Source of the DNA: Octopus bimaculoides
Lineage: Eukaryota
Assembly (NCBI RefSeq): GCF_001194135.2
Contig: NC_068989.1
Coordinates: forward strand, 4,360,319 to 4,424,318
Direction: 5' to 3'
DNA: 64,000 nt
Below the pieces are notes generated by a model, which did not search any database, was not told the origin of the DNA, and saw only the letters and a list, made by a program, of their open reading frames with translations. Shown piece by piece: positions 22,530 through 63,138 of this stretch. A program made the translations under genes and the position numbers. The number at the start of each line of letters is the position of its first letter. Position 1 is the first letter of the stretch.

Positions 22530-22559
22530 ATGGGGGTCTGCCAGTTCGATTTTATCAAA
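22530..22559 (+). CDS. CHS-A exon 1 coding part (MGVCQFDFIK)
   Basis: ATG plus 10 codons, then AAA|GTAAGT (phase 0). Joins ILFNIIGF to give FDFIKILFNII, like the K.LK..AY start of the first CHS transmembrane helix. Acceptor candidates at 22414 and 22508. Confidence 0.55.
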
Positions 22560-25500
22560 GTAAGTGATATTTTATTATAGATTTCGGTATTATTTATTTT
22601 GCATTATTTTTTTACTCTTTTTTTTTTGCTATTTATTTTCTTTACCACTATCCCTGTGCTTATTTGCTTCAGACTTTTACTCAATTGGTCAAACACCACA
22701 TTAAGTGATCAAGAAATTAATGAACCCCTTCTCATACATTTAAAACTATCGAAATCATTCCCATATATTTAAACCACTATCGATCAAATATTTAAAAGTC
22801 TATCGATCCCAATCTTATATATTTAAAACTCTGAAGCCGTTCGAATAAATTTCAAATAACATCGTGGCTATTCTTACATATGCAAACACTATGCGATAGA
22901 TGTAACTTCAATATATAGCATCATTAGAAGCCGGTGAGCTGGCCGAATCGTTACTGCGCCGGAAAGTTCAAATTCTACCGGGGTTGACTTCCATATTTTC
23001 GGGATCAATAAACTAAGTACCCGTCAAGCCGATGTAATCAAATAACTGTCCCTTCCCTAAAATTTCAGGCCTTGTACCTATAGCAGAAAGGAATTTATAG
23101 CTTTATTTTTCTCTCTTTGCCAATCAAATGTATTTTGCTGAAAGCAACCATGTCGAAGACAAGTTAAGTCGAAATCATTTCATCCAGGCTTCGTTAAATT
23201 TTATGTTCATGTTTTTGTTGCTTATTTCGACTGAATGAATCGATTATTTACCAAGGTGTTGTTTGTTTGTCGTTGCTGTCTCGGGTCCTGGGATTCATAG
23301 GACCGCTTACCTAGTTTCCGTGTCGCACAAATGGCCGAGGCCATAACATAGTTCCTAAACAGGACGTCAGTCTTTTGCTCAGATTACGCATTTTTGCCAG
23401 CTGGGTGGACTGGAGCGACATGAAATGTTTCGCTCAAAAACGCAACGCCCTGCCTGGTTCAGGAACTGAAACCAAGATCTTACGATCGTGAGTCCAACAT
23501 TCTAACCATTTGATCATGCACCTTCCATATACACTAGGTGATGTGAAAATTAAAATATGTTTACTTTAAGAAACAATATTTATACATGCACATGTGGACA
23601 AGAGAGCCTACATAGCAACACAATTTCTCGATGAATACGATAACGATACAAATTGATTTTGCTACTAACTAAACAAACTTAATCTTTGAAAAACATTTTT
23701 CATTCCTTAACTATTTCAGGTAATATATCAGAGTAAATATTCTTTCTTTAGATTTTACGTAACCTATACAAATAAAAAGGTATGCACGTGTTTTATTACG
23801 GGATTTTGTTATGATGGATTTTACGTCAAGACGAGATGAAGGTTAACATTACTTTAGGTGCGATACACAAGTGAAGGTTCTTTTGCCAATGTTCGTTTCT
23901 TTTTTAGCCTTTGAAAAACCTTTGCATTTATTCTCGTTTTTATTTTTAGCTCCAAAATGGCGGCGGACTGACAAAGTTGTTACTGTACTGAACAAAATGC
24001 TTAGTCGCTTTTCCTCCAGTTCATTACGTTCTACATTCAAATCCCACAGAGGTCAACATTGCCATTCGTCCTTTCGGGTTTAATAGAATAAAAGTGCGAG
24101 TCAAAGTCATGGTTGATGTAATCGACTTTCCCCCACCCCTAAAATTGCTGGCCTTGGGCTAAAATCTGAAGCTATTATTTAGCTCCAAGACATCTATGAT
24201 CGAAAAGACTCGTAACCAACATTTGTGATAATCACATTTTTCTTAAGATATAAAAGATCTCGAATTACATTATTTTGGATCCGCGTGAATGTTTCCTCTT
24301 ATGTCTGTACGTTCTAATGATATTTGGCTGCTATTCATTGCAGGTCAAATCACTAAATAAAAATGGCTCCTCATATAGCTAGCATTTATACATATCGCAT
24401 TTACACGATAGCTTCGCTAGACACACACCTTTTTACTTTTTGTTTTTGTTTTTGTTTTTCACATAAAATTAGCCAGGGATGGGGAGATGGTGCTCATGGC
24501 CTTTGAAAACCTAGGTTTGTGTAATTGAACATCTGTGGGTCAAAGTCTGCGAGGGGTGGGTATAAATGTGGAAGAAGTGAGAAGAAAACCATGTTTGGTC
24601 GAAATTCTTCAGTGAAAATTGCGAAGGATATTCAAAGATCGGACGGTATTCAAAGTTTAGCTTGTATTTGTGTATATATGAATGTATGTGTATATACATA
24701 TGCATGTATGTGTGTGTTAGTAAGTAGGAAAGAATGCTGGAGTGTACACATATATTACACCCATTAGTGCATAATACACACACACACACACACACAAATT
24801 TACAGGTGTGTGTATACAAAAAGAAATGCATATATATAAACAAAAAGCAGTCACTGATCTAATTCGTACAAGTGCGTGTGTGTGTATGTATGAGGGAGCA
24901 AACATTATTTGAGATAAATATTTACAAAAGTTGATTATATTTGGGCGGTTATCTCTCTCCAAAACTTTGACAACTTGTTCAGATCACTCACAAACTCACT
25001 CACTCACCGAACCAGACCCCATCACGCACGCTTATGTTTTGATTGTCTTTGGCTATGTCTGTTAGATAATAATGGTTTTGCCATAAAGGTAAAGGCGTCA
25101 GCAAACCGCAAAACAACACGGTTTCTCTTCTCTTAACCTAAAATGTAAAGAAGATTAATTTGTAGCCACACATGTTATTATAGACGACTAGCTCTAAATC
25201 GATTTTTGACCTATAAGCAAAGACAGTCTATTAGTATTTTTTTATGTAATTTGTCCTATCATTTTAGTAGGCATAATTCGTATTTCTTTCAGATCCAGCG
25301 ACCACATAAAGGCTCTCTTGGTTTATTTTTTCTATGTTATTGTCGTCCTGTATTTCTATAGTTATTTAGATCTAAATCGACAGTTCGTTTTAAGACAGTC
25401 CAGCCATGACCATCCTATCATTCTCTGGTGTATTACCAATTTAAGATTTCATTTAATGCATCTCTCCATTGTTACGACAGTCGGGTGTAATCTGATAGCA

Positions 25501-62000: not shown

Positions 62001-63138
62001 GTGGATAGCAACACTGGATATTATAGAAGCTACTTTGATAGAAGCATAAAAAATACTTATCTTCTTCGGTTTTTCATCAGGAAAGCAGTTTGTCTTTAGA
62101 GCATATTTTCGCAATTGCGGCCACCACACTGAAAAAATATCAGTTAGAAATCATTATTAATCGACAATATCAACTTTGTCATCGTCATCATTATCATTAT
62201 TATCACCACTTAAGATCATGTATGAATTTGGTGGCATATACACGAGAGATAACTTCGGTGGCGTGGAGAGGGGAGGCTGGTGTGCATGGGCGACTGTTTT
62301 TCTTCCATAAACAAGCTTACCCGGACTTGTACCTCGGAGGGTAACTTTCTATGTGTAATCCCATGGTCTTTACCTCCTAGACAATGTCTGTTGCTGTCTA
62401 CTAAGATAATGTAATATGTGAAAACATAACACCACCAAGCGTAGTCTTGTTCTTTTCTTTTTCTTTGTACAATGTAATGTTTAAATGTGTTAATGCTCTG
62501 TCCCTGAGCTCGAACTATCAGAAATAGTTGTGGATTTACTGATCACACAGGTACACTGATAGTATTAGTACACACACACACACACACACACACACACACA
62601 CACACACACACACACACACACACACACACACACACACACACACACACACACACACACACACATACACACACACACACACACACACACACTATCCAGGATG
62701 TCTGAAACGGTTATCAAATATTTTGATTTGAAATTCCACTAACCTCGATTCCATCTCCGATAGATGGTTAACATCAACAATTATCGAGTAATTAATCTGC
62801 TACAAATGTACTTCATGTTAAATTAGATTGTACACCACAAATACTATTAAAAGAATCATATAAACAACTTTACAATTCTCCTTCGTCTTAGACAAAAGAA
62901 GCTTCTACCAAGTGGAATAAGGTAGCAAACGATTAAACTTACCAATCGAAAGACCAATTAGTGTTGTCGAAATACAAATAGCTTGGTCACGTGTTATTAT
63001 ATCACGGATATAGAGAAGACAACCAATCACTGTTGGAAGCAATGATATAACCAACGCGGAAATAATTTTCCACAACATCTGGTGTCGATGTATTTGTTGA
63101 TTATCAGGAAAAATTTCGAATTTCTGCTGCGAGTTGTT
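49644..63138 (-). CDS. CHS: Chitin synthase paralogue B (GT2), 8 exons in the window, 1277 aa, 5'-partial
   Basis: complement join(63138-62943, 62128-60130, 58182-57971, 56962-56807, 56013-55522, 54178-53967, 52201-52090, 50098-49644) = 3834 nt, GT-AG introns, phases compatible. Motifs: [42 protein letters not shown] and SWGTR. Homologues of CHS-A exons 1-4 were not found in the window. Confidence 0.92.
50890..51068. repeat. (TA)n/(TATACA) compound microsatellite running into a gap
   Basis: Direct reading. Confidence 0.95.
52090..52201 (-). CDS. CHS-B polybasic exon ([37 protein letters not shown])
   Basis: ttttctttacAG|CAA...TTG T|GTAAGT, phases 0/1, the same position and phases as CHS-A exon 12. 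Not in the ORF track. Confidence 0.88.
52690..53012. repeat. (CAT/CAC/CCA)n low-complexity tract with an internal duplication
   Basis: The unit caacatcgccccctgcaccact(a/g)tcccaccaaca occurs at about 52745 and 52907, embedded in triplet repeats, within a CHS-B intron. Confidence 0.85.
53268..53343. repeat. (AAC)n(AAT)n microsatellite forming the tail of a minus-strand family-1 SINE (53341-53518)
   Basis: Direct reading; family-1 sequence follows. Confidence 0.85.
53967..54178 (-). CDS. CHS-B exon (HPSE..SWGTRDS)
   Basis: ttattttTAG|AT...TCG|GTAAAC, 212 nt, the same length as CHS-A exon 11. Confidence 0.95.
54971..55320 (-). mobile_element. Dimeric SINE family 1, same junction as 18297-18732
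   Basis: Minus strand ..gccccttgtgggcagtatagaaataag|agacgttagcatgcc.. at about 55172. Confidence 0.85.
55522..56013 (-). CDS. CHS-B exon (GEDRW, QRRRW and transmembrane helices)
   Basis: gcatttcAG|GT...ATAG|GTAAGT, 492 nt, equal to CHS-A exons 9+10 (261+231). Confidence 0.97.
56399..56568. repeat. (GATA)n and (TA)n microsatellites
   Basis: Direct reading. Confidence 0.95.
56807..56962 (-). CDS. CHS-B exon ([20 protein letters not shown])
   Basis: gtcattacAG|AT...ACAG|GTAAAA, 156 nt, the same length as CHS-A exon 8. Confidence 0.95.
57505..57865 (+). mobile_element. SINE family 5, near full length
   Basis: tRNA-like head (ggttctaggttcagtccc), a central (GT)n, and a 3' tail ccccaccactgcttgacaaccgg..cggcaaaa..ggggtcga. 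Confidence 0.65.
57971..58182 (-). CDS. CHS-B exon ([13 protein letters not shown])
   Basis: ttctggaacAG|A TGG...AAAG|GTTATT, phases 2/1. Confidence 0.9.
59229..59720. repeat. (GATA)n, (CATA)n and (CATC)n microsatellite cluster
   Basis: Direct reading. Confidence 0.95.
60130..62128 (-). CDS. CHS-B 1999-nt exon (transmembrane helices, CTTMYRE, KKRWSQ, long insert)
   Basis: ttttttcAG|TG...CAAG|GTAAAT (phase 2, matching the 58182 acceptor); covers ORF 60126-62129. Confidence 0.92.
62569..62689. repeat. (CA)n microsatellite
   Basis: Direct reading. Confidence 0.95.
62943..63138 (-). CDS. CHS-B first exon found in the window
   Basis: tatatttcTAG|AAC...ATTG|GTAAGT. Encodes [65 protein letters not shown](V), which aligns with CHS-A ILTISESLILPTSLLALSFTWCP. 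Not in the ORF track. Confidence 0.85.

Follow-up and report, generated by a model that had tools for sequence, protein, structure and literature searches.

Analysis of a 64,000-nucleotide stretch of the Octopus bimaculoides genome (RefSeq assembly GCF_001194135.2, contig NC_068989.1, positions 4,360,319 to 4,424,318; hereafter the window, in whose numbering all positions are given) makes it very likely that the window carries two intact and evolutionarily constrained paralogous genes for processive GT2 chitin synthases, that these lie tail to tail and diverged anciently, and that both belong to a conserved clade of mollusc and brachiopod enzymes which lacks SAM and myosin domains and is sister to the SAM-bearing type I chitin synthases. 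We refer to the forward-strand gene as gene A and to the reverse-strand gene as gene B. They add two members to a family already known and do not make up a new kind of system; gene A is already annotated in a sister species: its Octopus sinensis orthologue is 'chitin synthase chs-2-like isoform X1' (P0121, RefSeq, CM016868.1), which is 94% identical at the amino acid level in a single end-to-end alignment (1-1252 versus 1-1251) that leaves no part of the protein out, and has the same motifs.

Motifs were located by a six-frame search, which returned one full chitin synthase set per strand, and spliced models were built with homologous database proteins as a guide (Table 1). Over the 21 exons of both genes every junction is GT-AG and there are no N characters, stops or frameshifts. 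The stop codons, at 44261 in gene A and 49644 in gene B, are convergent and 5382 bp apart, as expected from an initial annotation of this DNA that described two catalytic cores facing each other across 5.4 kb. The motifs quoted in that annotation are present on both strands where it placed them, including the stretch from DFW to LYR in which 24 of 26 residues are identical, and the divergence that it reported elsewhere is evident from identities between A and B of 48% (C-terminal half) and 29% (N-terminal half).

Motifs, domain content and clade placement

Both proteins contain all nine chitin synthase motifs (xTMYxE, DxG, K..K, DxD, QxFEY, PG(A/C), EDR, QRRRW and SWG; list and roles taken from PMC12653383), with EDR, QRRRW and SWGTR intact as originally described. 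The Pfam family Chitin_synth_2 (PF03142) matches gene A with E=4.9e-21 (75.4 bits) and gene B with E=2.4e-24 (86.3 bits), the cutoff being 27. Neither protein gave a match to a SAM domain (PF00536, PF07647) at E<=0.01, none is precomputed for members of the clade, and no myosin domain was detected in A or B by Pfam. Both proteins end 25-45 amino acids past the last helix, which bears out the earlier remark that no SAM domain follows it.

A motif table of about 190 homologues resolves into three states. Type II enzymes (arthropods, nematodes, fishes, and the myosin-domain and other lophotrochozoan proteins) read CATMWHE, LDGD, FEYA(I/V)GHWLQKATEH, QYDQGEDRW and xPST, so the arthropod consensus that the initial annotation quoted was correct. 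SAM-bearing type I enzymes (sponge, Nematostella, amphioxus, bivalves and one Gigantopelta gene) read C(T/S)TMY(R/H)E, TDAD, F(D/E)YA(I/V)GHWFQKxAEH, (T/M)KDMGEDRW and xPST, and the clade of A and B reads CTTMYRE, TDAD, FEYAKDFWMIKxAQN, KDTGEDRW and xLSD. Three of the five substitutions first listed as non-canonical are therefore not special to these genes: CTTMYRE, TDAD and KDxGEDRW are the ordinary metazoan type I consensus, found in sponges, cnidarians, amphioxus and bivalves, and are unusual only when set against arthropod type II. The truly clade-specific states are FEYAKDFWMIKxAQN, the change from M to T before GEDRW (the Thr of KDTG, which lies on the previous exon) and QRRRWxLSD, in which LSD replaces PST; all are invariant in the mollusc and Lingula clade. 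The possibility raised at the outset that such residues might be the ordinary consensus of a well-characterised molluscan group holds in part: they are ordinary within this clade, for which literature searches found no functional characterisation.

A stricter scan, for columns fixed in the clade, fixed otherwise in type I and never seen outside the clade, returned seven sites, all of them C-terminal in the protein's two halves (M738, D786, F787, N795, V832, D884 and F1047 in gene A numbering). Two further positions also set the clade apart, residue 785 being always K/R in the clade and I/V/F/M outside it, and the residue four places after the QRRRW Trp (W+4) being always D/E in the clade and T/S outside it. 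The acidic residue previously described as next to the product-binding Trp is thus within one helical turn of it, and is adjacent in no closer sense. The clade has lost two His conserved without exception among the remaining metazoan chitin synthases. In the alignment, proven fungal chitin synthases carry N, S and S where the clade has lost His, His and Thr, and because of this we infer that the three lost residues are dispensable for chitin synthesis.

Placement in the family was examined with a neighbour-joining tree of 59 sequences over 337 well-aligned columns with 200 bootstraps. The clade containing A and B has 100% bootstrap support and includes gastropods, cephalopods, bivalves (Solemya, Mytilus) and the brachiopod Lingula. 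The SAM-bearing type I set (94%) is its sister, and the split between type I plus the clade and type II is again supported at 100%. The distinct subclade suggested by the initial annotation therefore exists as a lophotrochozoan, SAM-less group, and its special residues are shared well beyond the cephalopods and this one gene pair. A third lineage of the clade is present in octopus, represented in O. bimaculoides by P0011, which carries QRKRWVLSEMSN and groups with Lingula.

Zakrzewski et al. (2014) defined type I and type II and assigned "some novel lophotrochozoan" enzymes to type I, most of whose members carry one or two C-terminal SAM domains (PMC3942024). A and B group with type I in the tree and lack the C-terminal SAM domain. 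The clade has CTTMY(R/H)E, TDAD, KDxGEDRW and D(R/Q)SWGTR in common with metazoan type I enzymes; the latter differ in their C-terminal SAM domain, in having (I/V)GHW(F/L)QKxAEH where the clade has KDFWMIKxAQN on the first of two interface helices (IF1), and in having PST where the clade has LSD on the second (IF2), whereas the catalytic domain of the clade harbours a long disordered insert. Type II enzymes of arthropods, nematodes and vertebrates, together with the lophotrochozoan myosin-domain enzymes (Ar-CS1 type), share the general architecture, the GT2 core, EDR, QRRRW and SWGTR with A and B, and presumably the substrate too, but A and B differ from them at all four of CATMWHE, LDGD, GHWLQKATEH and QYDQGEDRW, fall outside type II in the tree and have none of the N-terminal myosin motors that some type II enzymes bear. 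It is type II that has been tied experimentally to cuticle, shell and radula, and in molluscs the myosin-domain type II protein is the one linked to shell and radula (PMC5995198); the use in beak, radula or sucker cuticle proposed for the present genes is accordingly unsupported. Nor are A and B hyaluronan synthases, in which QxxRW is followed by SKS and SWGTR is absent: both genes have SWGTR.

Interface helices, proposed mechanism and probable product

For structural comparison we used an AlphaFold model of the Argonauta A-type orthologue P0122, which is 72% identical to gene A (predicted template modelling score, pTM, 0.72). Its catalytic and membrane parts are confident. The insert, which is rich in Ser, Thr and Asp and splits the catalytic domain between KKRWSQ and TDAD, is disordered, with a predicted local distance difference test score (pLDDT) of about 30 over residues 436-572 of the model; it is still under purifying selection, the ratio of non-synonymous to synonymous substitution rates (dN/dS) in this region being 0.16 in gene A and 0.28 in gene B. 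The best 20 matches of the model in the PDB are all chitin synthases, with TM-scores of 0.5-0.62 normalised by target length. Hyaluronan and cellulose synthases rank below them, hyaluronan synthase reaching 0.3-0.47 on the same normalisation, and sequence matches follow the same order, with E=5e-6 for hyaluronan synthase versus 1e-13 for chitin synthase. The best structural matches are the fungal and oomycete enzymes CaChs2 (7STL), ScChs1 (7XS6) and PsChs1 (7WJM), which have the nine motifs and the arrangement of interface helices in common with the model. At the sequence level the catalytic region matches the Candida, yeast and Phytophthora enzymes down to E=1e-13 with an identity of only 12-15%, and the fungal enzymes differ in their N-terminal regions, which are without an N-terminal multi-helix bundle of the metazoan kind.

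In the P0122 model FEYAKDFWMIKSAQN forms one continuous helix (H647-670), and QRRRWMLSDxAN lies in another (H743-766). These two helices correspond to IF1 and IF2 of the solved enzymes. In gene A, IF1 carries the clade-specific residues K785, D786, F787 and N795 and aligns with the fungal segment QNFEYKISNILDKPTES; IF2 (QRRRWMLSDLAN) carries the acceptor-binding Trp together with two clade-specific residues, Leu (L882) and Asp (D884, encoded at 38870-38872). In the solved enzymes IF1 and IF2 flank the entrance to the chitin-translocating channel and contact one another through a salt bridge and hydrophobic packing; QRRRW contributes its Trp to acceptor sugar binding and its third Arg to donor diphosphate binding (PMC12653383). 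Because the special residues are on these two helices, reported to flank the channel entrance, the model places the clade signature predominantly at the channel mouth, away from donor site and catalytic base.

From these positions a mechanism can be proposed. UDP-N-acetylglucosamine would be bound in the cytosolic GT-A domain through CTTMYRE, DNG, KKRWSQ, TDAD and a metal ion; the Asp of GEDRW would act as the base and the Trp of QRRRW would hold the acceptor sugar; and the growing chain would be pushed out along a channel that is built from the C-terminal helices and gated by CCPGC and SWGTR. The changes in the clade (I/V to K, G to D, H to F and H to N after FEY; P to L and T to D after QRRRW) fall on the two amphipathic interface helices and are most plausibly a single, old and co-fixed remodelling of the channel mouth, possibly with a new Lys-Asp pair. 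Such a remodelling could tune acceptor positioning, gating or processivity and would leave the chemistry unaltered. Chitin is still the most likely product.

An alternative is that the clade has changed function, the altered channel mouth now yielding short chito-oligosaccharides, for instance, or a non-chitin polymer, by analogy with the difference between hyaluronan and chitin synthases. There is something to be said for it, since a long stem branch is followed by strict conservation, two invariant His were lost and charged residues gained beside the acceptor Trp, the SAM domain was lost, and our literature searches found no characterised member of the clade. We nevertheless regard it as improbable. 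All donor and catalytic motifs are those of chitin synthases and include QRRRW and SWGTR, which hyaluronan synthases lack; the His and Thr in question are also missing from fungal chitin synthases; and the fold comparisons place chitin synthases well above hyaluronan synthases. A related idea, to which we give a slightly better but still low chance, is that the remodelling of IF1 and IF2 (Lys and Asp gained, two His lost, Pro to Leu and Thr to Asp), kept for >500 million years, could change product or gating, giving for example short chito-oligomers or a soft, non-skeletal chitin, and that A and B might work as a pair. If this were true, the remodelled clade would form an animal chitin synthase class with a new function.

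Integrity, expression and age of the gene pair

The limits of the region first marked out agree closely with the gene models. Its start, 22530, is exactly the ATG of gene A, and its end, 63138, coincides with the acceptor side of the first gene B exon in the window (acceptor at 63139/63140), the frame of which is open upstream of the ATG at 63078. A start for gene A at the ATG at 28810 was rejected, the O. sinensis orthologue having supplied three further 5' exons including the true ATG. For gene B, pattern searches had failed to find the mini exon, and the proposal that it was hidden in the gap at 51069-51763 was ruled out when a peptide from a second cephalopod locus placed it at 52201-52090. 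The catalytic core of gene B is complete. Gene A and the gastropod orthologues of gene B have about 140 additional N-terminal amino acids, in 3-4 small exons, and the window edge probably truncates gene B on the 5' side, with more 5' exons beyond 64000.

Both genes are under purifying selection. Gene A compared with O. sinensis gives a synonymous divergence (dS) of 0.13 and a dN/dS of 0.30; exon 2 of gene B, compared with genomic contigs of a related octopus (L003), gives 0.23, falling to 0.155 in the transmembrane and catalytic part, and values over both genes span 0.15-0.33. Together with the nine motifs and the intact frames, this is in keeping with the earlier view that the enzymes are probably active. 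Logan contigs containing exon 2 of gene B were considered as evidence of expression and rejected, as their intron flanks align and they are genomic. In another, more distant cephalopod the A-type gene is transcribed and spliced: two sequencing runs contain contigs of 4.0-4.6 kb, each with one open reading frame of 1232 codons, and because that frame is uninterrupted the contigs represent spliced mRNA.

That one or both genes are decaying pseudogenes or artefacts of assembly (mis-joined scaffolds or collapsed haplotypes) seems very improbable to us. The window does contain fourteen N gaps, all flanked by microsatellites; searches with B-type N-termini from gastropods found no upstream exons of gene B in the 860 bp at 63140-64000; and no annotated gene B orthologue was among the returns for the O. 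sinensis, O. vulgaris and O. bimaculoides proteomes, a search for B-type protein in octopus giving only unannotated open reading frame fragments from raw assemblies (P0049, P0204). Decay or misassembly would, however, have to be reconciled with 21 uninterrupted, canonically spliced exons, with the collinearity of gene A with the RefSeq protein of a chromosome-level assembly to which it is 94% identical, with dN/dS well below 1 in both genes, and with a 594-codon part of gene B exon 2 that is open in four independent read sets of the related octopus. The B-type gene may be absent from current octopus annotations.

The initial annotation also regarded the pair as locally expanded, and here our conclusion is different. 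Gene B forms a group with seven gastropod proteins at 100% bootstrap, to the exclusion of gene A; gene A joins octopod and other cephalopod A-types, likewise at 100%, and the union of these with the gastropod A-type set has weaker support (58%). The gastropod orthologues of gene B, among which gene A does not fall, place the A/B duplication before the gastropod-cephalopod split in the sequence tree, so that it is not a local cephalopod expansion. The gene structure agrees: the B-type gene of Lottia has a giant exon like that of gene B, in which the membrane bundle leads into the catalytic domain. Thus a recent, cephalopod-specific, local inverted tandem duplication that created a new subclade is the least probable of the alternatives. 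In its favour are the adjacent and convergent arrangement, the intron positions and phases common to A and B (FEYAK/DFW, KDTG/EDRW and after SWGTRDx, together with a Lys-rich mini exon in both) and the extra recent A-type paralogues of octopus at other loci (P0123-P0125, P0069, P0127 and P0196); the low identity of the two halves, the gastropod grouping of gene B, the presence of both an A-type and a B-type in each of Lottia, Batillaria, Gigantopelta and Littorina, and the Lottia giant exon all count against it. The A-type paralogues elsewhere in octopus genomes, which are 72-83% identical to gene A, comprise P0123, P0125 and P0196 in O. bimaculoides, P0069 and P0127 in O. vulgaris, and P0124 and P0046 in O. 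sinensis. A recent expansion of A-types in octopus therefore exists, but at other loci.

What is local is the arrangement. A contig from a second, distant cephalopod carries a B-type gene followed 4.2 kb on, on the opposite strand, by the last exon of an A-type gene, whose identity to the transcript-derived P0126 is 81% and to octopod A 47%; because this contig shows B and then A on opposite strands, the convergent pair is conserved within cephalopods. In Lottia no A-type gene lies within 10 kb downstream of the B-type gene, and both types are on one 1-Mb scaffold. Close tail-to-tail adjacency is thus shown in cephalopods only, and it is this, and not the duplication, that is a cephalopod feature.

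Several points weigh against an ancient pair of intact, constrained chitin synthases in a SAM-less clade. The tree is a neighbour-joining one on 337 columns, the stem of the clade is long (0.32 substitutions per site) and the A group is monophyletic at only 58%. The structure model is that of a 72% identical orthologue, and the contact of the special residues between IF1 and IF2 is read from helix positions only. The literature searches returned no paper singling out the SAM-less subclade, its signature or its function, and no assay of any of its members. Evidence of expression comes from the A-type of another cephalopod, and gene B could be weakly or narrowly expressed. The failure to find either the upstream exons of gene B or an annotated octopus orthologue counts on the same side.

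Gaps and repeats in the window, and wider significance

The features discussed above are collected in Table 1. The window is AT-rich (36% GC), dense in microsatellites and interrupted by 14 N runs. Within 22530-63138 all of these runs are intronic or intergenic and none overlaps an exon, and the exons flanking each run join in frame through GT-AG sites. Every run is bordered by microsatellites of the (TA)n, (CA)n or (TATC)n type, for example at 50658-51068, 51764-51860, 21400-21570, 58262-58432 and 58776-58910, and for this reason the gaps look like unresolved simple repeats. Their lengths as stated are probably underestimates, because the O. sinensis counterparts of two gap-holding introns, those with the runs at 39016-39712 and 42210-42644, are 5-10 kb longer; the under-sizing of gaps is also part of the reason why the P0121 gene spans 63 kb in O. 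sinensis and gene A only 22 kb. The two loci are collinear at 88.5% nucleotide identity. One intron differs at a place where the window has no gap: window 32156-32411 corresponds to 31574-43303 of the O. sinensis locus (L001), which is about 11.7 kb longer there, and this is explained by an insertion on the O. sinensis side or else by a collapse of the window assembly.

Table 1. Coordinates of the two chitin synthase genes, their motifs and the surrounding features in the window
Feature	Gene A (+)	Gene B (-)	No strand or elsewhere	Remarks
Gene	22530-44261	63078-49644		A-type, 13 coding exons, 1252 amino acids; B-type, 8 coding exons in window, 1257 amino acids from ATG 63078
Exons	22530-22559, 27686-27795, 28848-28974, 30088-30234, 30880-31796, 33373-33637, 35624-36383, 37606-37761, 38733-38993, 39884-40114, 41451-41662, 42776-42860, 43804-44261	63078-62943, 62128-60130, 58182-57971, 56962-56807, 56013-55522, 54178-53967, 52201-52090, 50098-49644		B: 62128-60130 is the 2-kb exon, 52201-52090 the Lys/Arg-rich mini exon
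Motif 1, CTTMYRE	31735-31755	61457-61437		UDP-sugar binding site (role per PMC12653383); type I state
Disordered Ser-rich cytosolic insert	35660-36220	~61100-60130		A, ~190 amino acids; B, ~330 amino acids
TDAD	36227-36238	58127-58116		DxD metal/UDP-binding motif; type I state
FEYA	36368-36379	57986-57975
DFWM	37605-37616	56963-56952
Interface helix 1	36368-37650	57986-57971 and 56962-56920		A, QMFEYAK/DFWMIKSAQN, phase-1 intron 36384-37605
GEDRW	38732-38746	56014-56000		Catalytic base motif; exon part from 38733 (A) and 56013 (B)
QRRRW	38846-38860	55900-55886		Followed by MLSDLAN (A) and VLSDIAN (B)
Interface helix 2	38846-38881	55900-55865		B, equivalent 12 amino acids
SWGTR	41642-41656	53987-53973		Motif 9, gating loop
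Spacer between stop codons			44262-49643	5382 bp, tail to tail; two 10-N gaps and short interspersed repeat copies
N runs	29629-29819, 39016-39712, 40930-41270, 42210-42644	50413-50422, 51069-51763, 58433-58775	47100-47109, 47536-47545	In introns of A and B; elsewhere, between the genes
Short interspersed repeat copies			18296-18557, 54971-55232, 47689-47923 (inverted); also 15855-15965, 48697-48807, 49104-49214	~110-260 nt
124-nt direct repeat	26340-26463	62248-62371		85% identical; in gene A 5' intron, upstream of exon 2, and just upstream of gene B 2-kb exon

The spacer between the genes is collinear with the O. sinensis locus up to about position 49385. Copies of the short interspersed repeat are mutually 85-92% identical, with many more in the orthologous O. 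sinensis locus, and it is probably an element resembling a short interspersed nuclear element (SINE). The 124-nt direct repeat is probably another dispersed repeat and not a relic of duplication. Inside an intron of gene B, positions 52400-53040 hold a low-complexity, coding-like repeat with open reading frames on both strands that encode stretches of His, Pro, Val and Gly, and this most probably represents a simple-sequence repeat, not exonic sequence.

Animal chitin biology has been built almost wholly on arthropod-type (type II) enzymes, and we know of no enzymology at all for the type I branch. A point for annotation is that Octopus protein sets seem to lack the B-type gene. More generally, the window provides clean gene models for two members of a little-studied SAM-less offshoot and defines the signature of that offshoot as seven fixed sites, mostly on the helices that flank the channel entrance, which makes it both compact and testable.

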